Sequence record: LC727698.1
DNA length: 64,000 bases
Direction: 5' to 3' (one strand)
This document shows positions 7,955 to 49,487 of the stretch, piece after piece. A program made the position numbers and the translations under genes. The notes under the pieces were generated by a model. The model searched no databases. It worked only from the letters and a program-made list of their open reading frames with translations, and had not been told where the DNA came from. Within the stretch, counting starts at the first letter, position 1. Each line of letters opens with the position of its first letter.

Positions 7955-8110
7955 ATGACAAAAGAAATTGCTTTTACTGAAGGATTAAAAGCAGGCACTC
8001 AAATAAAAGAAGGCAAAGCTATCCTAACTGACTTCTTTCGATATTTCAATTCCTTACCAACTAATATGAGAACTTCTTTTATTATCGGTATCAAAACCGG
8101 TAGAAACTAA
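7955..8110 (+). CDS. Small hypothetical protein
   Basis: Internal ATG of the tracked ORF 7895..8110. Confidence 0.4.
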   Translation: MTKEIAFTEGLKAGTQIKEGKAILTDFFRYFNSLPTNMRTSFIIGIKTGRN

Positions 8111-8149
8111 TAAGCATATTAATTTTCATATTTTGGTAGACAAAGGTAC

Positions 8150-8470
8150 TCACTGGATGCATACTGTACACATACAGAACATACGGAGTACAAAGGGATG
8201 GACGCGCGCAGCCTGCTTAGCCTTATCGAAGACCTCCCTATAGCTGTCTTCGGCAGCACAATGGATATTGTTCATCGAGTCAATTTTGAAGCTCTGGACA
8301 ATGCCGCCCGCACCGACGGGGTAAAAGTCCACGAAGACGGAACCAACCGTTATACAGACGCTTTTGTCGATTGTTGGCTCCGCAGCGTCGAAACAGTTTT
8401 GGCCTGTTGCGATTTTGTGACCGAGGATGCCGCTAAGTGGTATATCGAGCACGGTGTCAAGTTTTGACAT
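8150..8470 (-). CDS. Hypothetical protein (GC-rich island)
   Basis: GAGG RBS before ATG 8470 (MSKLDTV...). Confidence 0.5.
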   Translation of the reverse strand: MSKLDTVLDIPLSGILGHKIATGQNCFDAAEPTIDKSVCITVGSVFVDFYPVGAGGIVQSFKIDSMNNIHCAAEDSYREVFDKAKQAARVHPFVLRMFCMCTVCIQ

Positions 8471-8565
8471 CCTCTGCCTCGCCTGCAGATAAAAAGGTTG
8501 ACGTAGACTAGCAATGGACACATAATAATTACAACGCAACGCAACTAGCCCTGGAGGGCAAAACT

Positions 8566-8685
8566 ATGTGCAACATCCAATGCATGAACAGCAAAGCAGG
8601 CGAGTCCTACGCATGGATTTGGAGCGATAGTGATAACGATATCTGCTACGAAGTCATCTTCAGGCATGGCCAGGTCATTACCTAG
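8566..8685 (+). CDS. 39-aa hypothetical protein
   Basis: Promoter TTGACG-N17-CATAAT near 8498-8526, GGAGG RBS; hairpin at 8724-8748. Confidence 0.5.
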   Translation: MCNIQCMNSKAGESYAWIWSDSDNDICYEVIFRHGQVIT

Positions 8686-8764
8686 GTTTGGCTCGGATAT
8701 GATATTGTAGCCTAACACCAACTAAAGCCCCGTCCCAGGCGGGGCTTTACCGAAGGAAAAGATC

Positions 8765-8974
8765 ATGATCGAACAACTGAAAGCCATGCTCGTAGCGCAA
8801 CGCATGCGCATGAACCAACTCGAAAAACTGCGCTACACCGGACGGGTCGCTGGCGAGTTGCATGCCCACGCCAGGGAATTGTGTGAAGCCTTGGAACTGG
8901 CAATTGCAAATGCCCAGTGCCTGGAAATGCGCAAGTGCGAAGAGGGCACCCTGCACGCCCTCTTCGCACAATAA
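8765..8974 (+). CDS. Hypothetical protein
   Basis: AAGGA RBS; host-like codon usage. Confidence 0.6.
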   Translation: MIEQLKAMLVAQRMRMNQLEKLRYTGRVAGELHAHARELCEALELAIANAQCLEMRKCEEGTLHALFAQ

Positions 8975-9007
8975 CCCACCGCGCACAACCCGACAAGGAA
9001 ACTAACC

Positions 9008-9499
9008 ATGAGCACTACCATCCCCGATTCGATTCATCCGAGTGATCTTCCTGAAATCGGGCTGCCATTAGCCGACGGAACCTTCTTTGCCCGCCATTGG
9101 CTCAATGGCAAGGAATACGCCTACGTCGATCTCGGCAAAAGCGCCGAGTTCACTGGAGAATGGGGCGAGTATGGGCAGGACGTGCTCGGCGCCGTTAGCT
9201 ATCGAGACGGAGCTTCGAATACGGTCGCCATGGCTGAAGCTGGCAGCCCGATTGCCAAGCAAGCTATGGAGATCGGAGAAGGCGTATTCATTCCCTCTGT
9301 TCTGGAACTGGCTCTTCTGTTCTCCGCCAAGCAAGCAGGCGAGTTGTCTGGTTTCGCAGATCGCTGGTATTGGTCGAGTTCGCAGGACTCCGCTAACGCC
9401 GCCTTCAACATGGACTTCGGCGACGGCTACACAAGCGGACACGTCAAGTACGTCGACTTCCGTGTCCGCCCCGTTCGCAAGATTCTCATCCTTCAGTAA
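9008..9499 (+). CDS. DUF1566 (Lcl C-terminal, C-type-lectin-like) domain protein
   Basis: PS..EL..L, WYWSSS and C-terminal VRPVR motifs; AAGGA RBS. Confidence 0.75.
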   Translation: MSTTIPDSIHPSDLPEIGLPLADGTFFARHWLNGKEYAYVDLGKSAEFTGEWGEYGQDVLGAVSYRDGASNTVAMAEAGSPIAKQAMEIGEGVFIPSVLELALLFSAKQAGELSGFADRWYWSSSQDSANAAFNMDFGDGYTSGHVKYVDFRVRPVRKILILQ

Positions 9500-9635
9500 T
9501 CTAGCCCCGGCGAGCAAACATTGCCCAGAAGGTGCTAGCTGAACGCCTGGCGGAACAATAAATAAAAGTTGACGTAGCCGAGCGAAGGGCGCATAATAAT
9601 TACAACGCAACACAACAAGCCCCGGAGGCGCAACC

Positions 9636-9836
9636 ATGACCCAGATCGTAGATGTCAAGCAAATTGCAATTGATGCAAACCGTCGCCCTGCCTACAATGC
9701 GGTCATGGTGCGCTGGTTGATGCAGGAAGCTGAATTGCACCGTAGCTGCGGTCGCACCGCTACCCTGTTCTGCATCGTTCGCAACCGCCCTGACGGCACA
9801 CAGCGCCAGCTTGTGCAGCTTGTGGCTAGCGAGTAA
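9636..9836 (+). CDS. Hypothetical protein
   Basis: Second copy of the TTGACG-N17-CATAAT promoter near 9569-9597; GGAGG RBS. Confidence 0.65.
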   Translation: MTQIVDVKQIAIDANRRPAYNAVMVRWLMQEAELHRSCGRTATLFCIVRNRPDGTQRQLVQLVASE

Positions 9837-9866
9837 CCTCTACAACCCTACGCCCAGGAGGCCGTC

Positions 9867-10031
9867 ATGAATGCTGCACTAGCCAGACTTCAAAACGAAC
9901 GTTGCATGTTACTTCGCCGGATGCTTTGCAGCAAATGGCACGGATTCTGTTTTGCAGGTCACCCTTGGGCAGAACAAGCCCGCAATCTGCACAACGAAGC
10001 CAAGTGCATCCGCGAACATCACAGTAAGTAA
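9867..10031 (+). CDS. 54-aa hypothetical protein
   Basis: AGGAGG RBS; MNAALARLQNERCMLLRRMLC...HHSK; below the ORF-track length cut-off. Confidence 0.55.
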   Translation: MNAALARLQNERCMLLRRMLCSKWHGFCFAGHPWAEQARNLHNEAKCIREHHSK

Positions 10032-21239: not shown

Positions 21240-24200
21240 CTACGGAGTTAATCCACTTCCAGGTCTGTTTTGTAAAAATATAGCCCAGGGAGTTGTACTT
21301 AGAGCAAGACCACCGTTATTATTTTCCCATATGTACTTACCTGTATCTTCTTGTTCTTGTTTATACGAACCGTCAAATACTCTAGTATATAAAGGCACAG
21401 TTGTATCTCCATTTGTTCCGGTATATACAGATGTCCCTAATGATCCCCTAGTCAATCCGTGTAATTTATTACCGCGTTTATATAAGAATTCTATACGTTC
21501 GGTTCCTATCCAAACTACACCGGGTTTACTACTAGACGGATCTACTATTGCAGATGCATCTACTAACTCTATAGATTTATCTGTAAGTTTTAATGGTTTA
21601 GCTAATCTAGTGCTATAATAATCAGAAATCCTAACATAGTGTGTTTCGCCCATTTCATCTAGGTGTACCCTGAAGCTTAGCGGTTTGGCAGGATATTTGA
21701 TTACAACATTATCACCTTGCATTGTAACTGGATTTATGAAATTGTGTTGTTCATTGAATACAGCTACCCACGAATTATTAACAATATCGGTTACTTTTTG
21801 AATGTTTGTTTCAGTCCAATCGATTCGTATAATATCGCCTGCGTTAAGAGTACCCTTATATACTACTAATAACTTAGCATTATCACCTGTTATATTTGTG
21901 AATTCTATAGTGTAGTCTTTGTCTTTAGTTTTACTAATTCCATTTATATAAACTGTCTCTCCTACAAAATTACGTATACTAGTATCTACAGTGAAAAGTT
22001 TTGTATTTGTATACAATATTTCTTTACTCTTACGAGTATATAAATTATTAGATACACTGATCATTCTTTTGTTAGCAGCAACAAACATGTCTAAAGTCTG
22101 CAACTTATATTCAGATGTAGTAACAGAAGTTATGTTATATTTGTTCATTACATACGAAACATAATCATCTAACTTCATTATAGAATAAGATTGATATTTA
22201 ACTGTAATTACAGTTCCTGCACTCGGCGCAATTTCAAAATTAATAACAAGTTCAGGAGTAATTCCACTATTATCTACAACTACTGTATAGCCATACATTG
22301 CAACTCCGCTTGAATAAACACCCTGGACTCTGTTGGGGAGAATATTCATACCTGTATGTATCATAGTATCTACACCATTTGCAGTAATATCTACAAACTT
22401 GTATGTAAGTTGTCCCGATGCCTGTGCGACTACTTCGTCAGGATTAGCAATAGTTGGCATATCTATAGGTAGTAGGTACACACTATCTGCATTTTCTGGA
22501 GAATCTATGCTTGGATCCCAAGCAAATGTATCCCATGTGTTTATATCTTTATTTTGTTTTGTATTTCTTAAATCTACAGTTATGTATCCTTGAGTATTAT
22601 CCCTTACTACCGAATTAGTATCAAACCTATAATCGTTAGCTACAGTAGTTTGTGAAGTATAATTATCTTTATAGACTACTGATATAATATCACCTGTACT
22701 GAAACTAGTAGGATATGCAATGACTACGGTATTAATGCCGTTGTTATCTATATTAAACTTCAATTTGTCTTCAGTATTAGGATCTCCGTTTATAACTAAC
22801 CCTATTATATCCTGTAACACTATTTTTTCAGTTAATACTATTTTAACAAACGGGTTCGAAGTATCTGTATTAGTAACAACATACTGAACTTCTGTAGTCT
22901 TCGCATTAGAATCTACAATAATAACCATGTTCTCTGTAGGAGATACTAATGCTTGTTCTTCTGGGATGCCTTCTCTTACGTCAGTATCTTCAAAATATGC
23001 ACCATCTATTATAGGCTTACTAGTGTCACTGTTAAATGTATTAGTAACAGGATTAAAAGTAAACACTATTTCGTCACCTTCTACTGCGCCAGGAACTTCT
23101 ATAGATGTAAAATTAGAACCTTTTGTAGCAGTGTATTGTGTAGAAGATCCATTTAGTGTTACGCTAGTTATATCTACTACATATCGTATGACAAATGTTG
23201 TTTTTCCTTCCGATATGACTGTTGCACTTGTTTCGGTATAATTAGGAGTAATAACATACGTAGCAGTAGAGGCATCCCATGCGTATTCGTCCCATTTTGT
23301 ACTATCCCACGGTCTGCTAAATATGTACTCAAAATCTTTAGCATCTATGACCTTGCCTTCATAGTCACACCCGTATTCGTCGCCGAATCGTTCGTTAAAT
23401 TGGAATAAAACATCTCTCTCGCCGGCTGAACTTTCGTATAGACGTTCAGTAAACGAACTGTATGGATATGAACCGTTTATGGGTGCGGCACTTAAAATAT
23501 CCCGTTGCAAGTCAGTTTGATATAATATATATCTTCCAGCAGCGCCAGAATATTGTAAGTATTCAGTCCATAATTGACGATTACCTTCTTGTATTGTGCC
23601 CGGTATACCCCAACGTAATTGACCCCACTTAGGTATACCCCAGCCGCCTGCGATTTTACCAGCCGGATCTATTGCTAAATCAAATATAGGTTTAAGCACT
23701 TTACCGGGTTGTCTAGCATTATATTCTAACCTCATTTCCTCTAACGGAGTTTGGGTGAATTCTGTACCAGAATATAATTTTATTTTAGATCCTATTTTAA
23801 TAAGAGTATTTGATTTAAATGTTACTTGTAGATAACCATTCTCGTTTATTTCTACATCATATTGCTCTTTAGTAATAGTTTTTCCATCTACCTTAATTTT
23901 CCAAACAGATTTTATATCGGTGTAGTTTACTATTATTACATCACCTGCATCAGGAGTAGAAGGAAGTATTATAAATGTTGCATTTAATATTGTAGTGAAT
24001 GTGTAACCTTCTATTTCTTGCCCATTTATTGTTACAGATGTTATTCTAGAAATATCTTTATTAGCACCTAATTGATATTGAGAAATTCCATCTAATGCTA
24101 TAAATTCATCATTAGGAGTATTTGCTATAAGAACTACTTGGCCACCGGTACCGATAAATGTTTGGTCGCCTAAGTCTATATAATTCGGTTTAGTTATGTA

Positions 24201-27200
24201 ACCGCATTGTACTCGATCGTATAACGAATTTATATCAAATAATCTGGGTACTTCTATCGGACGGAATGGTGCTTGTTCTCCCTCGTGATCGTCTGGCCAA
24301 TCATATAATGAATCATAGTCATACGCTGTTCCGTTCGCGATATCCATAGGAACATTATATTTTACCCCTAAGTCTCTTATTTTTGTAGTATACGGTTTAA
24401 TTTCTTTTATATAAGAAATAAAACTCTGTATAGGATCAGTTGTAACCGATTCTTGCTGAGTTAAACTTTCTCCTTCTTGATTAACTTTTATATAAGTAGT
24501 CTTGAATACCCAATCTAAGTTTTGTTGCTCAGATAAAATATAATTTATTAACGCAAAGAACACTAAGTTCCTCATTACTAAGTTTGCGTCTTTAAATACA
24601 TTGTTATAAAGAGCAAATATTAGTTCTCGCAGTGCATTATCATTTGTATATGATCTAGATACTGTATAGATTGCAGGCAACAACTGAATAGCACTGTTCT
24701 GACGTCCAATTAGCGTAAAATTTTGATTACTGTATTGATAAAGTGTAAATTCTTCAGGTCTTACTAATTTAACTATATCGCCGTCTTTTAGTTTTCCTAC
24801 AAGTCCCGTTAATTCACCTACAGTAGACACCTGTTTTACAGGTGTTGTATTAAATTGATTAAATCCGTCAGCATACCAGTTTACATATCTCCAAAGAACA
24901 GAAGACGCTAATCCGTCAGCCCATGCAGGATTAAAATCTTTTATAGATATAGTAGACAGAAGACTGTTTGCATTTTGAACAAATACTTTTCTTGCTGCCA
25001 TTCTATTATCTATCATAGATTGTCTAGGTCTTACTTTTATACCCAATTTACTAAATTCAGACAACGTAGGGTCAGGAACTATATCTCCGTTTATGTTATA
25101 TCCAACTAAACTATCTACTAATCTATTCCATAGATATGTAGGGATAACCGAAACTTCGTCGCCTTCCCTTAGTAGTTTCCATTCTGTATGTTTCTCGTTT
25201 ATATTTTTAGTGTATCTATAATTAACCTGGAATACTGGTGTTTTTCCATTAATAGTTTTTGATACATTAGAAAATACAAACGAATTATTTCCTATAAACG
25301 AGAACCATTTATAACCCTGTGATTTAGGATTAGTTATAAGATTCTCTACACTAGTAGAAGTCATATTTCTACTTTTTATATTATTAGGTATTTCTTGTTT
25401 ACCTTTTACCCAATAATAATATATAGGTGTTGCTTGGCCAGCAGAATTAGTGTCATACCTGACAACATAATCTGTTAACGATTTCGGTGTGCCGGTGCCG
25501 TTGTATAAATCAGGCGTAAACGGACTTGAAACCCATTCGTAAACATTTATTACTGAACCTGGGAATAGTTTACCCCAATTATCCCTTCTATATTCTAGAA
25601 TTTGTTCTTTGGTTTCAGATCCATCTAGTTTTCCGGGTTGTTCATATTGTAAATACCTGCAAGTAGATGTATCCCACCATAATCTTCCCACTTCAGAATC
25701 TGTAAATGCTAATTCGTCGTCTATATTTGCAGAATTAGCCGAGACAGAATATGTAGTAGGATCTATTTCTGATTTATAGTGAATGTTTCTATCAGCAGTT
25801 CCTGGTATTAATCCTTTAACTGGATCGTAAACTGGTAGAAAATCTATAGTTTGTTTAGTGTCTTTATCATAGAAGTATGCATTTTCGAATAATTTACTAT
25901 CTACTAAATTTTGTCTAGAACGAATATTTGTTATAGTAGATCCAGAAACAACAGCAACAGCCCAGTCATTATCTGAATTTATACTATCTATCCATACTTT
26001 ACCTGATGTTACGTTAACAGTTGCATTATTTTTAAATCTCACATTTTTAAAGAATAAAGGATTCTGTATAGGTACATTAGTTACTTGTTTACCTTCTTTA
26101 TCAAATATTGCATCTATAACACCGTCCGAATCTACAGTATACGAATATACCATATTGTTTATAACACAATACGGATATAGCGCATTAGTAGCAGGTGTTA
26201 GTCCAGAGTATATAACAAATACACCCCAGTCGATACCTACCGACGAGGCATTACCTACCCAAATGTAACTAGTTAGACTCGGTTTAGAAACATCTTTTCT
26301 TTCCCACAATGTAAATATATTTTTAGGATATAGTATTTGATGAGTAACATCTTTAGTGTTTACATACCCAGCTGTAGGTATATTTCCGTCTAGCTGTTTT
26401 GTAGTAGGAACTAATCTATCATTATACTTAATCTCATTACCTACAATTACTGGCATTCTGCCATTAGGTTTAGATAGCCAACGCTCGTTGTCATCGCTAT
26501 CTATAGTAATAATCATATCATATGGACTATCTTCGTCTATTTTATTTTTTATAATAGAAATTAACTTATCTATAGTTATGACAGTCTGGTTATAAATTAT
26601 TGCTATCTTGGGAGGTTTTATATAACCGTATCCTGGTTCAGTTATAGTAACAGAATCAATTCTTCCATTTTTTAATACAACCTGTCCTGTTGCTCTAATT
26701 TCCTCTACAATACTATTATTGGGGCTATTTAATTGATTGCCTTGCAAATACGCATCTACATTAGGATCTAAGCCAGCATTAGCTTCTTCAGGTGTAGCAA
26801 ATACTATTATAGGTGTAGTAGTATAAATCATTTCCGAACTTAACACTCTAACTTCAGAAACTTTACCTGTTCCGTATGATACAGGATATGATAATTCTAC
26901 TATTTGCGGATCACTTTTTACTAAATCGCCGTCAATTAATACTTCTAATTGTGCATTACTATTAGTAGCACCAAAATCTGCTAGCTTAAATGCAAATTCC
27001 TCATAAATCTGAATATTTTCATTACTTTTAATAAATTCAGATCGTAAGAGTTTATCTACAGACTGCTTTGTACCTTTCTGAGAAATCATGCCTTTATAGA
27101 ATAGATATTGCTGATCGCCTGTAATACGTAGATTGTTTAAATACTCTCTATCTTGGAATCCTATTAAATGTCTAGCAGTTTGTTCTATTATGGGATTATC

Positions 27201-30200
27201 TAATGTATTTTCAGTATCGTAATAATGCCATATTGAATCAGTTAAATTCTCAAAGTTTTGTAATAGATTATCATCTTGTATTAAATAACCATCCGCCTCA
27301 AATTTACCGTACCAATCGTTTGTGCGAATGCCGCGCAACTGAAGTCTTTTTTGTCTAGAGTATAGTAACGGATCGTATATAGTATCATTAAATATAGTTT
27401 TGTTATCAAAAAGTATAGCGTGTTCTGTATCACTCGTAGAAACACGGAATAAATATATTCCAATTTGATCGCTTTCGTGAGATACAGAGATAGTTCTTCT
27501 GTCCCTGTCTATAATAGTATCATTAGGCGATATAGCATATCCATTTTGATCTAATATACTATAAACACCATTTGATATTCTTTCTACCTTCTCAGGATAA
27601 CCTTCGTTTACTTCTAATGCAATTTTAGAAGCGCCCGGGGCGACGAATAAAGTGTTATTTGGTGCCCATTGAGTAGTTGCCCAGAATAAGAATCCCTTAG
27701 CAGAAGTAACCCAATTTAATACTTCTCCTGTAGTTTGGTCTATTTCATTAAATTTCCATCCGTTTAATTCTAAATACTGACCATATCCTATTAGGAAATC
27801 AAATACATCCTGAGGAGTATCTAATTCACTTCCGTATTCTATTTCGTAGAATTCGCTATAATCACCTTCATTAACATAGTTTACTGTTATACCGCCGGTT
27901 GCAGGAAGTGATTTTAGACGCATCCAGTTATCTTGATTAAATTTTCCCTGTGCTGCAATAACAACGCATTGATAGTAGACTCCATTGTACCGAACTACAT
28001 CTCCATAGTTGTACTGAACATTTGTGTCATAAATTGTGAAATTAGAAGTTGTTCCGCCTACATTTATTGTAGTTCCAGATACTAATGTACTTCTAGGAAC
28101 AACTTTAAATACAGGATTTAATACATCATATCCTCTTACTTCAAATTTTCCATATTCGTTTACACGTATTGCAACACCGCTGAATACGTATTCAGTTATA
28201 GGTTTGCCGGTGTATACTCTTACATGTATATTTTCGTTAGGTAACAACATGCTAGAATTAGTAGAGCCGCCAGATATACTATCAGCATATACGTTCAATG
28301 TATCTACATTGGTATATCCTGCAAGTCTATGTGCTAAACAAACATCTAACGAACGTATCTTACTACCGAAATTGTATGTAACATCTTGTTTACCCATAAA
28401 GGACAATCTATCAAACACATATTGTTGATATCCAGAGTTTAACACTACATTTCCATTTACCACTTCGCCATGGGCATATGTGTTACTATTAGCAATTCTT
28501 GTATATGTAGAACTTGATATATACTGCTTAGCGTTTATGGGTGCTCTTGTGTCGTCAAGTGGATTCCAATATCTTTCACCGAAATCTGCAGGTTTCATTA
28601 AATATAACAATTCTAACTGAACAAATGGCCATTCCGAATTGGTATACCATGCTTCTTCTACAGGACTATTGTCCCCGAATATCCATTCGTCTTGAAGTGT
28701 TTCTATTTCTTGATTAGAAAGCTGCGGAACTATACCTAACTCCTCTGGTGTTTTTAAATCACCAGAAGCATCCGACGGTATTAGATTTGGAACTAATCCA
28801 GTCCTTTTATACTTTTCATGGGTGCCTGCTCTATTGCCACGGCGAATTATACCGTTTTCAATATCAGTCCACATATCAGTGTTTTGTGAAGTATAATCTC
28901 CATTATATTCTTCATCCCACCAGGTCGGCTTTTCTACAAACCCTAACATTTCCCACGGTGTTTTATTAGGTGTTAGTGTGTTATAGTAGTATTTGTATAA
29001 TCCGCGCCAGGATCCGATAGAATCGTTACTAACTGGACGATAATTCCAAGTTTTCCAGTTTAACGAATTAAATCCAGAATATAATTTATAATTAAGACTA
29101 TTCTTTAAACACCATTTTAAGAAATAAGGTTTTACTATTTCATTATATTGTTGCAGAGTATACCCGTTTTCATAAAATTTTGTCGGTTTTACATCGTCTA
29201 ATTTAAGTAATAAATTGTAATCTAGTCTAAATTTGTCGGCAATATTGTTATATATTCTTGTTTCGAATTCTAATAATAGATCATCCCTAATATCGCCGTA
29301 GGTGGGTATTTTAGAACCATCATGACCTAAAATTACTTCTGTAGGAGTAACATAACTAGTATCTACAATTATTTTAGGTTGATATACAGGATAACATCCT
29401 ATTTTAGAAGGTGTTGCAGGTATTTTTGCAGAAAGTATGTTATTGTATATACGAACAATATACGACGTATTCGAAGGTGTACTAGACAGTTTAACAACTA
29501 AATTATTATTAGAATACGATAGTATATAGTCTTTATCTATTGTTAATGTATTGTAATCAACAGAAGTGCCAGATCTTCTAAATACAAGAACAGAAGAATC
29601 CATTTTACCTAATATGTTATTAGTCGGTACTAATAATGTATTTCCTACTGATGCGCTAGAGAAATTGTATTCATCGTATACATCACCCCATGCAGCCATA
29701 TATGACTGTGTGAAGGCACCATTGTATTCGAACGTGCTAGTAACGCGATTTATCACATATGTAAACAATGCATCTATGTTTACTGGGTTTGTATTTTGAT
29801 TTAAAGGCGTAGCTATTAATTCTTTTGCATATTTTATGAACTTATCTTTATATCTAGTATACTCGTCGCGTGCAAATCTTATAGCAGAATTTATATTTAA
29901 TTCTTCGCTAGAAGATACAAGCATTGTTTTTAACAATGGACTTCTGTTTTGTAGAATAAATGTACCTAAAGATTTGTCTTCAGCAGTATCTCTGTAATTA
30001 TTATTAGAACTATAAGGATCTCCTTTAAATCCTATTTGATTAGTCATTATACTAACAAAATGGTTTGTTAACTCATTCGACGAGTATTCATTTACTTCTA
30101 AGTTGTTAGGGTTATTCTCTAATTGTTGTGGAATTTGATAATACCCTAGTGCGTTATCTGGCAAAGCTTCTTTAGAATAGGTGTATGTTTGAATAACATC

Positions 30201-32813
30201 AGTTGCAGAGAGTGATCTTAGTATTTTTATAGTTTTAGTAGGTTTCCCGTCGTTATCTAGGACTATAGTAAATTCCACATTCTGTGCAAGGGTAGATTTA
30301 TTGTATTCTACTCTTATGTCAAATATACCCGGTTCCAATTCTTCGGGTGTTACGCTTAGTTCGTATTCTTTTTGCGAAGAATCCGATACTACAAATCTAT
30401 CTATTACTCTTTGTTTAGAATTTCCGTCAAATGGCACCCAGGTATGCTCATATGTGGGATTAGAGCCAGATATTGTATAATTCCATTGTTTAAAATAATA
30501 ATAACCTTTTATTGGTTCGAATTCATTTCCGTTAAAGTATTGGAATACATCCATGTGAAGATCGTGTCTAAACACAATATCGGATATTTGACCTAAGTTT
30601 TTTACTTCAATAGGAAATCCTAGTATTTCATCGTCGTATGCACTTTCTTCATTTATTTTATACGAAAAAATCTTAGATCCAGCAAATGTAGATTGCGGGA
30701 AACTATCCAACGAAATTGCATTGTTATTAGAGTCTAAATCAGTATAATATAAATTAAATAAAGGAGCTTTGTTAGCATTTGTTTTTCTATTATAAGTCCT
30801 TTCCCATTGTACTCCAGTATAATAGAACATGTCTCCTGCAAATGTATCTCCTTCAGTTACTAATACTACATCTCCTTTAGCAACTTTTGTGTATTTGTTA
30901 GGAACAGGGATTATACTGTTTACTACAGTATTGTCTGGTTGTTCTACTTTAACTATTTTCCATATATAGTCTGTTGCATTTAGTGTAAGAGTTTCGTTAT
31001 CTCTTACTATTAATTTAACAATACTATCGTCAGGCACTATATTTTTAAATTCTACTAATAGTGCATTATCTTGTTCTATTGTAAAACTAACAAAATCATC
31101 TGCAGGATTATATAAGTAGTCATACGATACTGGATCATTGTTTGCATCTCTTGTATATGCATCTATTTGAATACCTATTATATGATTACCTATATTTTGT
31201 TGAGTAAAATTAAAAGTAAAATCATTATTAAATAAAAATGTTCTTCTGGCGCCTGGTCCTTCTATTGCTTCGGCAGCCGGCTTCTTATACATGTTTACTT
31301 TATTGTTTACATTTATTTCTACTTGGTCACCAGGCAATAACCCATCTATGTTATCATTTATGATTACATCAAATGCTAAATTAGTAGGTAAGGTAGTTCC
31401 TGTAATGGTTACAATGCTATTATTCTTGCCAACCGGTGTATTTAATGTTTCTACATTAAATGTAAACGAAGTTCTTGGCTGTCTTATAGATGTTCCTCTG
31501 TTAACTACATCTATAGTCTTAATAGTTCCTACGCTAGATGGTGTATAAAATTTATATTCAATGCCATTTGTTATGTTTTCAAAACTAACATTGTTTATAT
31601 CATACGAAATAGGATTCCATTGCAATCCTTTTGTGTCTGCAATGAAATTCATTTGGTTTAATTCATCTTCGTACGAATACCATTCGGGATTGTAAAACAT
31701 TTTGTTACCACGTTTTACAATTACAAATATATCATCTGTATCAGTAAATGGTTTTCGTAATATTATATTGTATGGTGCTGCATCTGCAATAAATGTATCT
31801 ACAATTGGATAAGTTATTGTGCTATTAGATAAGAAAATTAACTTATCTTGATCTTCTAATAGTTTTCCATCAATAGTGTATGATGCAGAATTTGATATAC
31901 TAGAAATATTATCAGACTCGGCTACTAGATTAACTTCACCTAAGTAATTATTTCCAGATTTAAATAACTCTATATCTCTATCAAACTCTATAATAGGTCT
32001 TCTTGCCTTAACTGCGTTGTTATATGTAGATGTATTGGTTGCAGAGGCAGAAGTTGCCATTACAGATTTATGATACCATTTGTTAGTGCGCGACCAGGCG
32101 TTGCCATCTCTGCAGCCACGTTCTATAGTGATATAATCTACCGAACCGACCGTATCTACTAAGTGAGATTCATCTTTTACTAAAATAATACCTTTTCCAA
32201 CACCTTCTACAGTTAATGGTCTATTAAATGAAGACGAGTTAGTATATTGTATTCTGAGTCCGTTAGAAAGCTGAATAGTATTACCGTTTTCTAATGTTAT
32301 ACTGGCGTTCTTTTTTCCTATTATATTGTTTATTATCCATTCGTCTGCGTTTATACCACTTTCGTTTTCTACTGTTAACATAATAACAGGCAGCCGATCT
32401 TCTATCCAATAATAATTTTGGAAATTTATAAATTTATCTAAATCTATCGGCGGACCGAAAGAATAATATCCACCAGAAAATAAAGTGTCATTATTCTTTG
32501 TATTGGCACCATAATAATTTAACCTGTTTAACAAGTCTTGGTAAAACATTATATTTGTTTGATCTAACGTAGTAGAATCAATACTATACGAGGTTGCTTC
32601 TAACTGATACCAAGTCCGTTCTTTAGTAGGTTCTGCTAAGTAATAATCGTTTATAGGATCATGTCTACCAGGAACTCTTCTACCTATGTAAGCAGTTATA
32701 TCCTCTACATTCTTTTTAGAAAATAGTTGCTCAAATGTAGCTAAAAAGAATCTTTTTTGGGTATCTGTTCTAAATATACCAGGTAACTTGTTAAACGTTT
32801 TTAATGTTGCCAT
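21240..32813 (-). CDS. Giant baseplate wedge/structural protein (3857 aa)
   Basis: Uninterrupted 11.6-kb ORF within the baseplate operon, after the gp6-like and gp25-like genes. Confidence 0.7.
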   Translation of the reverse strand: MATLKTFNKLPGIFRTDTQKRFFLATFEQLFSKKNVEDITAYIGRRVPGRHDPINDYYLAEPTKERTWYQLEATSYSIDSTTLDQTNIMFYQDLLNRLNYYGANTKNNDTLFSGGYYSFGPPIDLDKFINFQNYYWIEDRLPVIMLTVENESGINADEWIINNIIGKKNASITLENGNTIQLSNGLRIQYTNSSSFNRPLTVEGVGKGIILVKDESHLVDTVGSVDYITIERGCRDGNAWSRTNKWYHKSVMATSASATNTSTYNNAVKARRPIIEFDRDIELFKSGNNYLGEVNLVAESDNISSISNSASYTIDGKLLEDQDKLIFLSNSTITYPIVDTFIADAAPYNIILRKPFTDTDDIFVIVKRGNKMFYNPEWYSYEDELNQMNFIADTKGLQWNPISYDINNVSFENITNGIEYKFYTPSSVGTIKTIDVVNRGTSIRQPRTSFTFNVETLNTPVGKNNSIVTITGTTLPTNLAFDVIINDNIDGLLPGDQVEINVNNKVNMYKKPAAEAIEGPGARRTFLFNNDFTFNFTQQNIGNHIIGIQIDAYTRDANNDPVSYDYLYNPADDFVSFTIEQDNALLVEFKNIVPDDSIVKLIVRDNETLTLNATDYIWKIVKVEQPDNTVVNSIIPVPNKYTKVAKGDVVLVTEGDTFAGDMFYYTGVQWERTYNRKTNANKAPLFNLYYTDLDSNNNAISLDSFPQSTFAGSKIFSYKINEESAYDDEILGFPIEVKNLGQISDIVFRHDLHMDVFQYFNGNEFEPIKGYYYFKQWNYTISGSNPTYEHTWVPFDGNSKQRVIDRFVVSDSSQKEYELSVTPEELEPGIFDIRVEYNKSTLAQNVEFTIVLDNDGKPTKTIKILRSLSATDVIQTYTYSKEALPDNALGYYQIPQQLENNPNNLEVNEYSSNELTNHFVSIMTNQIGFKGDPYSSNNNYRDTAEDKSLGTFILQNRSPLLKTMLVSSSEELNINSAIRFARDEYTRYKDKFIKYAKELIATPLNQNTNPVNIDALFTYVINRVTSTFEYNGAFTQSYMAAWGDVYDEYNFSSASVGNTLLVPTNNILGKMDSSVLVFRRSGTSVDYNTLTIDKDYILSYSNNNLVVKLSSTPSNTSYIVRIYNNILSAKIPATPSKIGCYPVYQPKIIVDTSYVTPTEVILGHDGSKIPTYGDIRDDLLLEFETRIYNNIADKFRLDYNLLLKLDDVKPTKFYENGYTLQQYNEIVKPYFLKWCLKNSLNYKLYSGFNSLNWKTWNYRPVSNDSIGSWRGLYKYYYNTLTPNKTPWEMLGFVEKPTWWDEEYNGDYTSQNTDMWTDIENGIIRRGNRAGTHEKYKRTGLVPNLIPSDASGDLKTPEELGIVPQLSNQEIETLQDEWIFGDNSPVEEAWYTNSEWPFVQLELLYLMKPADFGERYWNPLDDTRAPINAKQYISSSTYTRIANSNTYAHGEVVNGNVVLNSGYQQYVFDRLSFMGKQDVTYNFGSKIRSLDVCLAHRLAGYTNVDTLNVYADSISGGSTNSSMLLPNENIHVRVYTGKPITEYVFSGVAIRVNEYGKFEVRGYDVLNPVFKVVPRSTLVSGTTINVGGTTSNFTIYDTNVQYNYGDVVRYNGVYYQCVVIAAQGKFNQDNWMRLKSLPATGGITVNYVNEGDYSEFYEIEYGSELDTPQDVFDFLIGYGQYLELNGWKFNEIDQTTGEVLNWVTSAKGFLFWATTQWAPNNTLFVAPGASKIALEVNEGYPEKVERISNGVYSILDQNGYAISPNDTIIDRDRRTISVSHESDQIGIYLFRVSTSDTEHAILFDNKTIFNDTIYDPLLYSRQKRLQLRGIRTNDWYGKFEADGYLIQDDNLLQNFENLTDSIWHYYDTENTLDNPIIEQTARHLIGFQDREYLNNLRITGDQQYLFYKGMISQKGTKQSVDKLLRSEFIKSNENIQIYEEFAFKLADFGATNSNAQLEVLIDGDLVKSDPQIVELSYPVSYGTGKVSEVRVLSSEMIYTTTPIIVFATPEEANAGLDPNVDAYLQGNQLNSPNNSIVEEIRATGQVVLKNGRIDSVTITEPGYGYIKPPKIAIIYNQTVITIDKLISIIKNKIDEDSPYDMIITIDSDDNERWLSKPNGRMPVIVGNEIKYNDRLVPTTKQLDGNIPTAGYVNTKDVTHQILYPKNIFTLWERKDVSKPSLTSYIWVGNASSVGIDWGVFVIYSGLTPATNALYPYCVINNMVYSYTVDSDGVIDAIFDKEGKQVTNVPIQNPLFFKNVRFKNNATVNVTSGKVWIDSINSDNDWAVAVVSGSTITNIRSRQNLVDSKLFENAYFYDKDTKQTIDFLPVYDPVKGLIPGTADRNIHYKSEIDPTTYSVSANSANIDDELAFTDSEVGRLWWDTSTCRYLQYEQPGKLDGSETKEQILEYRRDNWGKLFPGSVINVYEWVSSPFTPDLYNGTGTPKSLTDYVVRYDTNSAGQATPIYYYWVKGKQEIPNNIKSRNMTSTSVENLITNPKSQGYKWFSFIGNNSFVFSNVSKTINGKTPVFQVNYRYTKNINEKHTEWKLLREGDEVSVIPTYLWNRLVDSLVGYNINGDIVPDPTLSEFSKLGIKVRPRQSMIDNRMAARKVFVQNANSLLSTISIKDFNPAWADGLASSVLWRYVNWYADGFNQFNTTPVKQVSTVGELTGLVGKLKDGDIVKLVRPEEFTLYQYSNQNFTLIGRQNSAIQLLPAIYTVSRSYTNDNALRELIFALYNNVFKDANLVMRNLVFFALINYILSEQQNLDWVFKTTYIKVNQEGESLTQQESVTTDPIQSFISYIKEIKPYTTKIRDLGVKYNVPMDIANGTAYDYDSLYDWPDDHEGEQAPFRPIEVPRLFDINSLYDRVQCGYITKPNYIDLGDQTFIGTGGQVVLIANTPNDEFIALDGISQYQLGANKDISRITSVTINGQEIEGYTFTTILNATFIILPSTPDAGDVIIVNYTDIKSVWKIKVDGKTITKEQYDVEINENGYLQVTFKSNTLIKIGSKIKLYSGTEFTQTPLEEMRLEYNARQPGKVLKPIFDLAIDPAGKIAGGWGIPKWGQLRWGIPGTIQEGNRQLWTEYLQYSGAAGRYILYQTDLQRDILSAAPINGSYPYSSFTERLYESSAGERDVLFQFNERFGDEYGCDYEGKVIDAKDFEYIFSRPWDSTKWDEYAWDASTATYVITPNYTETSATVISEGKTTFVIRYVVDITSVTLNGSSTQYTATKGSNFTSIEVPGAVEGDEIVFTFNPVTNTFNSDTSKPIIDGAYFEDTDVREGIPEEQALVSPTENMVIIVDSNAKTTEVQYVVTNTDTSNPFVKIVLTEKIVLQDIIGLVINGDPNTEDKLKFNIDNNGINTVVIAYPTSFSTGDIISVVYKDNYTSQTTVANDYRFDTNSVVRDNTQGYITVDLRNTKQNKDINTWDTFAWDPSIDSPENADSVYLLPIDMPTIANPDEVVAQASGQLTYKFVDITANGVDTMIHTGMNILPNRVQGVYSSGVAMYGYTVVVDNSGITPELVINFEIAPSAGTVITVKYQSYSIMKLDDYVSYVMNKYNITSVTTSEYKLQTLDMFVAANKRMISVSNNLYTRKSKEILYTNTKLFTVDTSIRNFVGETVYINGISKTKDKDYTIEFTNITGDNAKLLVVYKGTLNAGDIIRIDWTETNIQKVTDIVNNSWVAVFNEQHNFINPVTMQGDNVVIKYPAKPLSFRVHLDEMGETHYVRISDYYSTRLAKPLKLTDKSIELVDASAIVDPSSSKPGVVWIGTERIEFLYKRGNKLHGLTRGSLGTSVYTGTNGDTTVPLYTRVFDGSYKQEQEDTGKYIWENNNGGLALSTTPWAIFLQNRPGSGLTP

Positions 32814-46029: not shown

Positions 46030-46779
46030 TTAAGCCTCTTTTTTATTAGTTTCTATTTTTGCTTTATCTAGTTGCTGTTTACTAATATATTTCGCATTAA
46101 TTGTTATATTTTTGTTATCTCTTGCTTTAGTTAACCTATGAGCACCGTCTATTACATATAGTTTACCGTTGTCTTTATACACTATTATAGGGATGCTCAC
46201 ATCGGCAGCTTTTACTCTCGACGGCGCTAATTTGGTATATCGTAATATCCATGTTAAGTCTTTTATTTTAACACTTTCTACAGGAGCATGCTCTGTACTT
46301 CTAAAAATATCATCTAATCTATATTCATTACCATTATGCGTTAACGTACTATGTTTACCTTCTGAATAAGATTCAGAAATAGTATTAATATTGTTGCCTA
46401 TGTTAGATATTCTTGTTAAACTAGATTTAGTATTAGAAGCTATTATGTCTCTACTATCTCCCGATCCTTTAAAATCGTAAACAATTATTCTTACTACATC
46501 GGGGAATATAGAAGATTTATTTACTTTAAGTCTTTTTATACGGTTACCCTGGTTGTCGTATAATGTTTCGTCAATTATATTAATATTAAAAGATTTTGCT
46601 AAATCCTTTGCAGTAATACCTACCTCTGCAGGCGATTCTTTAGAATATCTAGCCCTATTATCTATTACTAACTCGGTATTGTTGAAAAATGGATATTTAT
46701 TCAATACATTGTTTAGTATTTTTTTAAATTTTGTATCTATAGGCTTAAACGGTAAAATCTCACCTTCTATAAATCTCAT
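46030..46779 (-). CDS. Hypothetical protein with C-terminal ParB/Srx-like domain
   Basis: PIIV......YVIDGAHRL motif. Confidence 0.55.
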   Translation of the reverse strand: MRFIEGEILPFKPIDTKFKKILNNVLNKYPFFNNTELVIDNRARYSKESPAEVGITAKDLAKSFNINIIDETLYDNQGNRIKRLKVNKSSIFPDVVRIIVYDFKGSGDSRDIIASNTKSSLTRISNIGNNINTISESYSEGKHSTLTHNGNEYRLDDIFRSTEHAPVESVKIKDLTWILRYTKLAPSRVKAADVSIPIIVYKDNGKLYVIDGAHRLTKARDNKNITINAKYISKQQLDKAKIETNKKEA

Positions 46780-46781
46780 TA

Positions 46782-47279
46782 TTATTTACTCAGCTGTTTT
46801 ACTTTCTCTTTATTCTCTTCTGTCCAGAAATTATTCCAACTACAGAATACCCAACCCTTATAATCTATACTATTATTTACTTTAATACCGGTTTTTTCTT
46901 CAAATACTACCCATTTGCCTTGCCGCGTTATTTTTATAAAAATAATATTAAAATCACCTTCGCTAGCAGTATCGCGTACCTGTGATATCCATGTATCTAA
47001 CTGTTTGCACTCTCCTTCGAACAACGAAGTAAATGAAAATTTTGCATACGATTTACATTCAGAATTAAAATGTTCCCATGTATCTGGAGGGAAAATATCA
47101 CCTTTATAGGATTTGATTTGATTATTACCTAGTGATGTTTTTCTGACAGAATTTTGTCCTCCTATAAAGGCACCTGAATGTGCTGTTCTAGTAAAGGGTT
47201 CGTTGTAAAATGAGGTAAGATCTTTTGCTACATCTCGTTCCCAGCTACTACCTTTAATTTTACTTTTCGATCCAGACAT
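46782..47279 (-). CDS. Holliday junction resolvase (Hjc-like PD-(D/E)xK)
   Basis: SK.KG..WERDVAK.L, GDI and ECK motifs. Confidence 0.75.
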   Translation of the reverse strand: MSGSKSKIKGSSWERDVAKDLTSFYNEPFTRTAHSGAFIGGQNSVRKTSLGNNQIKSYKGDIFPPDTWEHFNSECKSYAKFSFTSLFEGECKQLDTWISQVRDTASEGDFNIIFIKITRQGKWVVFEEKTGIKVNNSIDYKGWVFCSWNNFWTEENKEKVKQLSK

Positions 47280-47410
47280 GTTTTGTTAACCTTTTATATA
47301 CCTGTTAAATTTTACATTATTTAGTTAATTTTATACCCATATAATACTGTCGAGATAAATATGTGTGTAGATAACTTATAGCATTATTTTTAACGATTTT
47401 AGTACAATGG

Positions 47411-47439
47411 TTGACAGTATTAATATCGTATGCTATAAT
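47411..47439 (+). promoter_or_regulatory. Consensus sigma70 promoter with extended -10
   Basis: TTGACA-N17-TATAAT with TG at -15/-14; no ORF of 60 aa or more follows for 1.35 kb. Confidence 0.9.
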
Positions 47440-47445
47440 CCGCAA

Positions 47446-48410
47446 CATAATAAAACTAAAGAACGTATGTAACAAAACAGACGTTCTCCTAAGTGTTTTA
47501 AAGTTTTTGCTTAGGAAGACCCAGTTGTATGTTTAAAGGGTGAACGGTAACGGGCATTCTTGTTTAAGACTAGTTCTTATGAAGACATTGGCAACTAACA
47601 TAGCAGCTTTGTTCCATAATTGGATATTGGTAGTAGAAACTATCCCCATCGTGCCTTTACTGTAGTACCGTTAGAGACGGAGATAACGCAGGAAAAAAGG
47701 TTATTTAAATTATGATTTTGGGTGCTGCAGAACACTTTCGTAAACAAAAGGAATATAGTTTACGTATACACAACGGGAACGGGAAAAAGCTTTTTAAGCA
47801 AAAACGAGTCCCTGGTAATTGGTGTTTAACGGGAGTGACGTCCCAAATGTTATTCATCGATTAACACTGTAAGAAGGTTGTAAGGGTTATTGTGTTCGAA
47901 GTGGTTTACACAACTGTTCTTCCTACATTTATGTACAGAAGTGTAAACGAAAGGATGTTGCTCTGGTAGAAAAAGATCAACGTACTTTATGACACTATCC
48001 TTGTGACATATGTACTTGTACCAACAACAGCCGCAGGTTACGGATATGGTATTACAAACTGTACTGCGGTTCCGGGAGTTGAAAGTGGATGTTAGCTTAG
48101 GTGGCTGTTTGCTTAATTATAATGTTTAATTTAGGCAATATAAGCGTCGGGTGAGGCTTTCGTAGGTTGCGTGTTTATGCTACGGTGTAAATGGGCTAGA
48201 CTACTGGCGCATACATGAGTATTGTAGGATTGGCGCTTTAATAAAGAAATTTGTTAAAGTTTGAGTTTAGCTCCCCGCTCATTAGCAATAAACGTTGCTA
48301 GTCGATAGTATACCCACGCCTAAATAATGCCGTCATTGTTTAGTTTTTTTAAAAAATATAATTGTCAATTATATGTCGTACGCATCTACCCCGAAAAGGG
48401 GTAGATGTTT
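47446..48410 (+). ncRNA. Candidate large structured non-coding RNA (~960 nt), family unassigned
   Basis: Strong promoter, no ORF, raised GC with G>C, many local and long-range helices, closing hairpin CATCTACCCC/GGGGTAGATG. Confidence 0.65.
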
Positions 48411-48792
48411 ATGACTTTCGTTTACACTCATGTCATAATCAGTACACGCCATTTTAGGCCATTCTACATCAATACACTGCTAGAAGCAGTGTATTGGACA
48501 TACAAAATAATCTTAAATTATATCAAATTTGTTTAATTACTTTAATCTTGTTACTTTAGTAACTTGTATTTTGTTTATATGAGTTGTAGTTTACGAAAAC
48601 GAATATAAACAAAATACATATGTGAACTGTAGTTCACATACTTACTAACGTTGTATATTACGGTAATTCTATAAAATATCTCTATATAATTATAAACGTT
48701 TTATGGCATACTACGACTGAACGAAATTGAAAATTAACTAGAGATTTAATTAGATAAATAATATTGTAAAAATTGTATAGAGGTATACATCA

Positions 48793-49245
48793 ATGAACGA
48801 TTACACACATTACACAGAGGAAGATTTCATATTTTTAGCATATGATTTAAATACTCAGCTTATAAATGATGGATATCCTGACGCTGCTGTAAAATTTATT
48901 ACTAATCAGTTTATTTTAGAGCATAGACATCCTGACGAAATAAAACGTTGTATAGGATGTAATTCTAAAATGTACGAAGATGTTATTGCTACTAAGAGAA
49001 ATTTATCTGGTAAATCGCATTGCAGACATTGCGAATCGAAACTTAGTATGTATAAGGAAGTTGTTAAAGAAGTAGCAAATACAACACAAATACTTCGCAT
49101 ACCAGAAAAACATTTAAATTCAGTTAAACGATTAATTAGAATATATAATGAGCAAAACAAAACTAGTGCATATCAGAGTATATTAGTTAAAACAAAGAAA
49201 CTTAACACAGGAGTTTCTAAAAAGTCAAAAAGAAAGGGACGTTAA
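48793..49245 (+). CDS. Hypothetical protein with CxxC...CxxC zinc-finger and basic tail
   Basis: CIGC...CRHC; GAGG RBS; GATAAATA at 48754-48761. Confidence 0.75.
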   Translation: MNDYTHYTEEDFIFLAYDLNTQLINDGYPDAAVKFITNQFILEHRHPDEIKRCIGCNSKMYEDVIATKRNLSGKSHCRHCESKLSMYKEVVKEVANTTQILRIPEKHLNSVKRLIRIYNEQNKTSAYQSILVKTKKLNTGVSKKSKRKGR

Positions 49246-49260
49246 TTGTCCCTTTCTTTT
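49229..49260. terminator. Bidirectional intrinsic terminator
   Basis: AAAAGAAAGGGAC/GTCCCTTTCTTTT between convergent genes. Confidence 0.8.
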
Positions 49261-49487
49261 TATAGGAAGCTTCTACCTGTTTCTGCTTCGATTTTTTGTT
49301 TAATAAATTCTCCTAAACGTACCCGCTCTTGATATGATAAAGACCAAGCAGTGTGCCAGTCAAATCCATTAATTTTATCACATATTTGGACTATTTCGCC
49401 TTCTAATCCCAGTGATTCTTGTTCATATTCTTGTATAACGTTCCTAATATCATCTGGGGTTCCCGATACTAGGATTCTCTGAAAAAA
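49260..49487 (-). CDS. -1 frame extension of the gp26-like gene (gp51/gpT-like chaperone part)
   Basis: 73-codon open frame with no ATG/GTG/TTG, entered at slippery T-TTT-TTC (49487-49481). Confidence 0.7.
   Translation of the reverse strand, partial: FFQRILVSGTPDDIRNVIQEYEQESLGLEGEIVQICDKINGFDWHTAWSLSYQERVRLGEFIKQKIEAETGRSFL

Follow-up and report, generated by a model that had tools for sequence, protein, structure and literature searches.

A probable new family of large structured non-coding RNAs between nuclease and baseplate-hub genes of PA5oct-like jumbo phages

The window analysed here is a stretch of 64,000 nucleotides (nt) from sequence record LC727698.1 (Pseudomonas phage 30-3). It contains, between a nuclease gene and a gene for a 150-amino-acid (aa) protein, a gap of 1513 nt (47280-48792) that is free of open reading frames (ORFs) and very probably harbours, on the plus strand, the gene of a large structured non-coding RNA (ncRNA). 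The gap is 100% identical to phage 30-3 at the same coordinates, and it matches ten further records at 99.4-99.6% identity, all from jumbo phages of the PA5oct type (Wroclawvirus, about 285 kb); the counterpart in PA5oct (MK797984) is 75,667-77,187. No phage of the INPHARED collection beyond the PA5oct-like records matched the gap. SbcCD-type and resolvase-type nuclease genes lie on one side of the locus and a convergent late baseplate-hub gene on the other. In the deposited annotation of PA5oct, the stretch holds four 'hypothetical proteins' of 38-50 aa on both strands (EST35_0142-0145), and the GenBank records of other isolates have between five and seven such small ORF calls, with an overall size of about 38-52 aa; gp141-146 go unmentioned in the main text of the PA5oct paper (PMC7318152).

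Transcription of the RNA would start from a host-type promoter (Table 1), which is the only perfect consensus match between 46.5 and 49.5 kb. This promoter had already been recognised in a first-pass annotation made from the letters of the window, as had the high GC (guanine plus cytosine) content and the G-richness of the body, and both observations proved correct: from 47400 to 48400, GC content varies between 0.35 and 0.43, with a GC skew between +0.13 and +0.33, compared to a GC content of 0.21-0.29 in the directly adjacent non-coding DNA and of about 0.27-0.35 in the neighbouring genes. The minimum free energy (MFE) of the plus strand of 47446-48412 is -272 kcal/mol versus -239.5 +/- 7 kcal/mol for dinucleotide shuffles (z = -4.69), and none of the 20 shuffles folds as well; the z-value of the minus strand fold is -2.18. 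Phages 30-3 and PA5oct differ by one substitution in the 965 nt of 47446-48410 and by 52 and 34 substitutions in the two 4-kb flanks. From these flanks, about 10.4 substitutions are expected in the RNA body (Poisson P about 4e-4): among PA5oct-like isolates, the flanking genes have diverged about ten times more than the RNA body.

As DNA searches returned only near-identical isolates, the search for relatives was moved to the neighbouring proteins. Homologues of the nuclease were found on Logan contigs, with 70% identity on L047 (identical to L048 and L049), 64% on L050 (with L051) and 53% on L052, and the DNA beside the nuclease genes of L047 and L050 has short collinear blastn matches to the gap of the window. 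A pattern made of conserved sequence islands located L062 in IMG/VR, with an exact island match over 19-23 nt, and a search with the baseplate-hub protein led to L086, where island 2 is 96% identical. A profile hidden Markov model (HMM) of the first module recovers the members with E-values of 1e-19 to 1e-30, and L052 with 5.5e-7. To date, the family thus has six distinct members: the window and five from metagenome contigs (L047, L050, L052, L062 and L086). Pattern scans yielded little else: four scans of IMG/VR gave one true match (L062) and otherwise chance matches in coding DNA, scans of JGI metagenomes gave 16 chance matches and no member, and a scan of GTDB (185,579 reference genomes) gave five chance matches and no member. 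Synteny via GenBank phages led to Salicola SCTP-2, which has no gap, and to Sinorhizobium phage Phosso, whose gap has no similarity to the window that we could find. Internal paralogues were also considered and rejected, as the apparent three places per record are the region's own palindromes.

Islands 1, 1b and 2 are collinear in the window, L047, L050, L052 and L062, together with the island-1 hairpin and the helix 47645-51/47713-22, while L086 carries only island 2 and the CCAAC of island 3. The conserved islands have the same order in the members and are separated by hairpins of unrelated sequence. In L047, L062 and L086, island 2 has 83-96% identity, and it aligns in L050 and L052 too; with covariance model R1, it is detected in L050 (E 1.6e-5), L086 (E 8e-4) and L062 (E 0.03). 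Measured from the predicted start to the terminal hairpin, the RNA is 966, 803, 1000, 758 and 575 nt long in five members and about 700 nt in L052. The promoter position is kept as well: TTGACA or TTGATA-N17-TATAnT is present at the equivalent place in L047, L050, L062 and L086 and thus, with the window, in five of the six members, followed downstream by a similar start region, ACAU(A/U)A. Folds of the homologues compare to their shuffles with z-values of -4.28 (L047), -3.05 (L050) and -1.99 (L062).

The first-pass annotation had pointed to relatives and to compensatory changes as a check of its proposal, and such changes were found among the homologues in two modules. For the module of islands 1 and 1b (47629-47722), five members were aligned (alignment A4) and a structure written by hand from the sequences was tested: over its 20 pairs, 93% of the cells are standard pairs versus 30-40% in controls with the 3' partner slid 1-3 columns, and eight pairs have double changes versus zero to two in the slid versions; none of 500 shuffles scored as high. 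In the island-1 hairpin, half of the six pairs have double changes; its stem reads GUUAGU/ACUAAC in most members and AGUAA/UUACU in L052. The longer-range helix 47645-51/47713-22 has CCCA/UGGG in the window versus CACG/CGUG in L047, and all seven pairs are kept in all five sequences. This helix has conserved G.U pairs at fixed positions, which would be A.C mismatches on the other strand, indicating an RNA of the plus strand. In island 3, compared between the window and L047 (alignment A5), all 12 pairs are kept and the six arm positions with substitutions make up three compensatory pairs; the island is otherwise 84% identical and has two conserved G.U pairs. When the pairs predicted from the sequence of the window alone are transferred to L047, 64% are kept versus 37-42% with slid partners, with 29 double changes versus 12-21.

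Weaker evidence comes from helices that were matched by hand (47488-47515, 47739-47764, 47775-47812, 47904-47948, 48161-48184, 48283-48300 and the terminal hairpin). By inspection, hairpin 47488-47515 has two double changes in comparison to L047, and so has hairpin 48283-48300, which is CUGCAAU-AGAC-GUUGCAG in L047. L050 and L062 have other stems at the place of hairpin 47739-47764, L050 has CAACUG/CAGUUG at the place of the island-3 helix, and a different hairpin precedes the conserved UAAUGGG (starting at 48188) in L047. Most helices that the first-pass annotation had drawn were recovered: TCCTAAG/CTTAGGA, CGTAAAC/GTTTACG, GGGA/TCCC, AGCCGCAG/CTGCGGTT, CGTAG/CTACG and the hairpin 48383-48407 are all present, with differently spelled counterparts at the same place in the homologues. 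Of the others, AACAGCC/GGCTGTT is the losing alternative to the covarying helix AGCCGCAG/CTGCGGTT, and ATTTAGGC/GCCTAAAT is supported neither by the fold nor by L047. The pair AACGGTA/TACCGTT falls within insertions that only the window has, and it would run across the supported helix 47645-51/47713-22.

Table 1. Features of the locus (coordinates of the window unless a contig is named).
Feature	Position	Strand	Remarks
Nuclease gene	46782-47279	-	PD-(D/E)XK/RusA-like, resolvase-type (PHROG: RusA-like; Pfam: PDDEXK_15); left border of gap
GATAAATA motif	47354-47361	+	candidate phage late-type promoter element upstream of RNA; promoter role putative
sigma70 promoter	47411-47439	+	TTGACA-N17-TATAAT with extended TG; 12/12 match
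Non-coding RNA body	47446-48357	+	start predicted from promoter and conserved ACAU(A/U)A; 3' end also predicted
5' arm of closing stem	47448-47463	+	pairs with 48336-48351; inverted repeat I8 of 16 nt with 88% complementarity and arms 872 nt apart
Hairpin CCUAAG/CUUAGG	47488-47515	+	conserved U-rich loop; L047 has GUAGG/CCUAC round the same loop GUUUUAAA-UUUUU
Island 1	47626-47651	+	AUUGKUAGUAGAAACUAWCCCCAU; hairpin 47629-34/47639-44 with loop AGAA, then 5' arm of helix (47645-47651)
Island 1b	47712-47730	+	AUGAUYUUGGGUG; 47713-15 pair with 47649-51, 47719-22 with 47645-48
Hairpin CGUAAAC/GUUUACG	47739-47764	+	conserved loop AAAnGGAnUnUA; L047 has AAUCGAGU/ACUCGAUU with similar loop (by inspection)
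Hairpin GUUUACAC/GUGUAAAC	47904-47948	+	L047 counterpart GUUUAUAA/UUAUAGAC
Island 2	47950-47976	+	AAAGGAUGUUGCUCUGGUAGAAA; own hairpin 47957-47981
Island 3	48021-48073	+	CCAACAACAG...GUUCC; CCAAC, then helix 48030-36/48064-70 enclosing helix 48039-43/48059-63
3' domain	48161-48300	+	hairpin CGUAG/CUACG (48161-84); island UAAAUGGG (48188-95); hairpin 48283-48300 (UAGCAAU-AAAC-GUUGCUA)
10-bp GC-rich hairpin	48383-48407	+	loop GAAAA; inverted repeat I7; immediately 3' of RNA body
Downstream two-hairpin module	48566-48641	+	15-bp AU-rich stem 48566-80/48603-17 (I1), loop with GUUUACGAAAACGA; second hairpin 48618-41
150-aa ORFan gene	48793-49245	+	right border of gap
L004-group RNA	L004 6540-7060; L007 5650-6205; L008 and L045 6505-7040		between nuclease gene and conserved 58-aa ORF beside hub gene

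The 3' end of the RNA body is placed at a U-run that follows a weak AU-rich hairpin at about 48326-48346. The stem 47448-47463/48336-48351 is used in the MFE fold, and the folds of L047 and L062 have shorter closures between the 5' and 3' ends; together with the complementarity of the two ends, this suggests a closed, compact molecule that would end near 48357, at the U-run. In all homologues, the place of the hairpin 48383-48407 is taken by a hairpin with another stem, with GCAA loops in L047 and L086, a GUAA loop in L050 and other loops in L062 and L052; no U-run follows it in the window and it is therefore not a classical terminator. Differently spelled stems with ACGAA-containing loops, similar to the downstream two-hairpin module, come after the RNA in L050, L062, L086, L085, L084 and the L004 group (see below), and GUUUACGAAA of the window's loop is perfectly complementary to 47736-47745 inside the RNA (I25). 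Two self-complementary sequences were observed in addition. The 12-mer AAAAAGCUUUUU (47784-47795), inside the conserved interior loop of the helix 47775-47812, is perfectly self-complementary in the window, is not palindromic in L047 and could mediate dimerisation in this phage only. Further downstream, 48470-48496 is a perfect 12-bp palindrome with a 3-nt loop that is inverted between isolates (AGA in 30-3, TCT in PA5oct), an inversion of the kind made by template switching.

The octamer GATAAATA had been read in the first-pass annotation as a phage late-type promoter motif, placing the RNA under tandem promoters. The motif is indeed where it was reported and is found upstream of the RNA in five of the six members (in the window, L047, L050 and L052, and in L062 as a copy that overlaps the -35 element), but it is not enriched in the window, with nine sites versus about nine expected. 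Going by the ORF lists, at least five of these nine sites are in the right orientation and not more than about 70 nt upstream of the start of a gene or RNA; copies lie directly upstream of the hub gene and of the gene for a 798-aa protein (a divergent pair, with copies on both sides) and of the 150-aa gene (48753). Conservation in five of six members and the position of at least five of nine sites before starts make a late-type role of the motif, and hence a tandem promoter, plausible. Phage PA5oct is dependent on the RNA polymerase of its host (PMC7318152). The 2018 preprint describes early transcription of PA5oct as almost exclusively from the Watson strand, which is the strand of the RNA, and gives 39 TTGAC/TATAATA promoters (bioRxiv 10.1101/406421).

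The RNA belongs to no family in Rfam 15, as the first-pass annotation had supposed. A cmscan of the 64-kb window returned nothing at gathering score, including GOLLD, ROOL, HEARO, OLE, raiA, group I and II introns, RNase P, tmRNA, 6S and EGFOA; at E<=10, the region 47200-48800 gave only noise (12.7-23.2 bits versus cut-offs of 55-117), the six homologous loci gave nothing at E<=1 and the loci of the L004 group nothing at gathering score. ARAGORN found neither tRNA nor tmRNA in 47000-49000. A self-splicing intron of group I or II was rejected, since the flanks are complete separate genes on opposite strands and the intron models have no match. Likewise, a sponge for RsmA/CsrA of the RsmY/RsmZ type was rejected as GGA motifs are not enriched (13 in the RNA versus 11.0 +/- 2.6 expected; AGGA 5 versus 3.0; the homologues are similar): island 2 (AAAGGAUGU) does resemble a CsrA/RsmA site from SELEX (systematic evolution of ligands by exponential enrichment), but the GGA is missing in L062 and L052.

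GOLLD and ROOL RNAs tend to adjoin tRNA genes, and in this they differ from the RNA described here, which has no tRNA genes beside its locus. They also differ in sequence and structure, with Rfam silent apart from noise down to E=10, and in provenance: Lactobacillales and rumen versus a Pseudomonas jumbo phage and environmental metagenome contigs. What they share with it is the general plan: phage-borne, non-coding, multi-domain RNAs of 0.6-1 kb with their own promoter, in which short invariant islands stand apart with variable, covarying hairpins between them. GOLLD and ROOL (RF01998, RF03087) are giant ornate RNAs of phages and prophages that reportedly form RNA-only multimeric cages (bioRxiv 10.1101/2024.12.08.627333). 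Four ncRNAs of PA5oct itself have been published (ncRNA001-004, at 8263-8498, 21951-22401, 103065-103368 and 246116-246734; PMC7318152), and none overlaps with the locus; the 2018 preprint counts five (bioRxiv 10.1101/406421), and the comparison of coordinates made here covers the four of the 2020 paper. These four are from the same phage species and are transcribed regions that likewise lack ORFs and relatives in databases, but the locus studied here exceeds each of them two- to fourfold in length.

The DNA of the stretch is non-coding. The absence of ORFs, which the first-pass annotation had reported, extends to all of 47280-48792: the longest frame from start to stop has 52 aa, and each of the six frames is interrupted by 32-43 stops that include all three stop codons, so that no recoding opens a frame. 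A hidden gene with one stop codon read through was rejected, as it would reach at most 127 codons on the plus strand or 249 on the minus strand, with many other stops left. Sixty-nine stop-free pieces of at least 15 aa were each searched alone by tblastn against the homologous regions. Apart from one alignment of 56 aa (32% identity, E 0.004), the matches span only 5-31 aa and cluster at the nucleotide islands, in more than one frame and on either strand, whereas the flanking proteins have E-values of 1e-20 to 1e-72 in the same comparison; a degraded gene and small ORFs were ruled out by this search. That the stretch nevertheless holds the four to seven small protein genes of about 38-52 aa found in the deposited records (EST35_0142-0145 in PA5oct, five to seven calls in other isolates) is hardly credible, even though the PA5oct authors, according to paper and preprint, added many small ORFs where RNA-seq showed transcription (PMC7318152; bioRxiv 10.1101/406421). 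None of the annotated small ORFs is kept as a reading frame or peptide in any homologue: the ATG of EST35_0144 (47712), for example, sits in island 1b, but its frame ends after seven codons in L050 and after 27 codons in L047. The similarity is one of nucleotides and extends to all frames and both strands; indels that separate the window from L047 disregard the frame, and the annotated ORFs lie on both strands. Public annotation is corrected accordingly: the four to seven 'hypothetical proteins' that eleven deposited genomes carry here most likely do not correspond to genes.

A transcript without a protein product could also serve DNA replication, namely as a structured pre-primer of the ColE1 RNA II or T4 oriE type that would form an R-loop in the AT-rich, palindromic DNA of 48410-48790 and prime the leading strand. 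The locus has the look of such a system: a strong early host-type promoter is aimed at a palindrome-rich region of 21-29% GC at the far end of a G-rich, folded transcript of hundreds of nucleotides (GC skew up to +0.33), amid genes for replication, recombination and baseplate, with SbcCD- and resolvase-type nuclease genes around it and convergence on the late baseplate-hub gene. At T4 oriE, early transcripts reportedly run against late baseplate genes in a similar arrangement, as Vaiskunaite et al. (1999) are said to have described. Phosso has a similar ORF-free gap of 1 kb between resolvase and RNase HI genes, and the loop of the palindrome at 48470-48496, being inverted between isolates, points to hairpin activity at the DNA level. 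In L052, a 41-nt repeat in 3.1 tandem copies (L052 1-127, 100% identity) is found directly beyond the RNA; such a repeat could represent iterons, but also a terminal repeat or, being at the contig end, an assembly artefact. Against a primer stands that the window has no iterons, no direct-repeat family of more than two copies in 47280-49300, no identified RNase H site and no identified antisense regulator. There is no skew switch: the minimum of the cumulative GC skew is at about 42 kb, away from the locus, and tracks gene orientation. Moreover, terminator-like hairpins separate the RNA body from the AT-rich DNA, the length of the RNA ranges from 575 to 1000 nt and the fold is conserved as a whole: loops and junctions, G.U pairs and compensatory changes over 900 nt exceed what a primer needs. 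We therefore regard an origin transcript as improbable.

Still more improbable is a cis-acting leader, that is, a very long 5' untranslated region or processing signal for the 150-aa gene (48793-49245). This gene is next downstream in the same orientation, a homologue of 118 aa with 43% identity comes after the RNA in L047, and no strong classical terminator was found on the plus strand of the window. However, the gene has its own GATAAATA motif, and its protein is an ORFan limited to PA5oct-like phages in the protein search, with tblastn alone giving the homologue in L047; the genes that follow the RNA in L062 lie on the opposite strand, L052 has yet other neighbours, and in L047 a canonical terminator of stem and U6 ends the RNA. 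A decaying remnant, be it a dead gene or a junk spacer whose promoter and foldability are due to chance, would fit the failure to detect relatives beyond a handful of phages in IMG/VR, JGI metagenomes and 185,579 reference genomes, but this reading is slightly less credible again: constraint exceeds that of the neighbouring genes, the promoter is conserved, the substitutions are compensatory and no piece has similarity at the protein level in the homologous loci, to which, rather than to a general protein database, this search was limited.

With these alternatives weighed, it is highly probable that the locus holds a real, conserved and structured ncRNA gene of a new family, in agreement with the RNA of about 1 kb proposed in the first-pass annotation: the fold is more stable than that of shuffles, islands and covarying helices recur in homologues and no ORF is conserved. 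The region from 47446 to about 48357-48410 is best explained as an independent gene for a large RNA of several domains and about 0.9-1.0 kb. The host RNA polymerase would make this RNA from the onset of infection, with possible late transcription from the GATAAATA element in addition, and pairing of the 5' and 3' ends would give a closed, compact fold; the RNA would act in trans through its fold and not as message or leader. The invariant loops and junctions may be, as a guess, contact sites for one or more proteins. The likeliest single mechanism, possible though short of probable and likewise a guess, is then that the RNA binds proteins as a scaffold or decoy during infection; less likely is a ribozyme, or an RNA-only particle that assembles itself in the manner of GOLLD/ROOL.

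Several points weigh against this interpretation or narrow it. There are only six distinct members, and formal covariation covers two modules, one of them with two sequences only; the other helices were matched by eye, which is open to cherry-picking. The pairs predicted for the window give a weak signal in L050 (about 50% versus 34-43% slid), and their transfer over the whole length gave no signal in L062 and L052 with alignments based on sequence only; probably, the weak or absent signal over the whole length is caused by unreliable alignment at 45-50% identity. The pair test of the whole molecule fails to separate the two strands, the 3' end is uncertain and the locus is absent from the list of four ncRNAs in the PA5oct paper (PMC7318152). 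As to mechanism, which is a guess, no ribozyme or receptor motif was identified and no gene of a partner protein is consistently adjacent.

To our knowledge, there are very few bacterial or phage RNAs of more than 500 nt with a conserved fold, and we know of hardly any understood ones among large folded RNAs that are not ribozymes, ribonucleoprotein cores or, recently, self-assembling RNA cages. The RNA described here would be a new family within a known general kind, the large structured phage RNAs such as GOLLD and ROOL. Unusual for that kind is its host, a cultivable model jumbo phage (PA5oct and its relatives, with Pseudomonas aeruginosa PAO1): strand-specific RNA-seq and genetic tools exist for PA5oct, making the function of a large orphan RNA directly testable, beyond metagenomes.

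The data also indicate a conserved genome slot, reaching from recombination nucleases to the baseplate hub, in which related phages keep other structured RNAs. L004/L005, L007, L008 and L045 (the L004 group) have a roughly 500-nt ORF-free segment in this slot, with about 75% identity and 22 covarying pairs among four sequences, and L080-L084 have a segment of roughly 630 nt there. Both groups share with the window the position between resolvase-type nuclease and baseplate hub, the absence of ORFs and the ACGAA-loop hairpin module that follows, but neither resembles the RNA of the window directly: blastn, profile HMM and covariance model were all negative between the RNAs of the window and of the L004 group, and direct homology of these two was ruled out on these grounds. 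The 5' half of L086 holds segments of both groups (88% identity over 50 nt; 78-83% over 60 nt) and its 3' half has islands of the window type. In the absence of direct similarity, the relationship is positional and indirect, via L086 only, and the RNAs of the two groups are regarded as positional counterparts and possibly as modular relatives. A bolder reading, which we consider distinctly unlikely, is that the RNA is the founding member of a new giant 'ornate' class of T4-core jumbo phages, made in bulk by the host RNA polymerase, with the fold itself working as a ribozyme or RNA-only multimer, and with the RNAs of the L004 and L080 groups as modular variants of one superfamily joined via the chimeric L086.

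Some further observations concern the slot and its surroundings. The 1-kb ORF-free gap of Phosso (L003, PV764938.1, 4954-5967, on the minus strand of the locus), between resolvase-type and RNase HI genes, has visible hairpins and a sub-threshold Rfam match to EGFOA (29 bits versus a cut-off of 37.7, E 0.0056) and possibly represents a further large RNA of a phage in a comparable slot. In PA5oct-type phages, a block of two genes (window 46030-47279, for a structural protein of roughly 249 aa and the nuclease) is inverted relative to the L004 group (L004 5231-6555), where the block runs in the direction of SbcCD. L085 1-1392 encodes a T4-type portal protein with an intein (Pfam Intein_splicing inside Portal_T4). 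Elsewhere in the window, 1-2000 and 8001-10000 have a GC content of 47% and 52%, compared to about 33% for the genome; foreign genes, genes derived from the host or further structured RNAs could account for this. The minus strand of 21240-32813 has a single ORF of 3857 aa followed by one of 1319 aa; giant proteins of this size are typical of this phage group.

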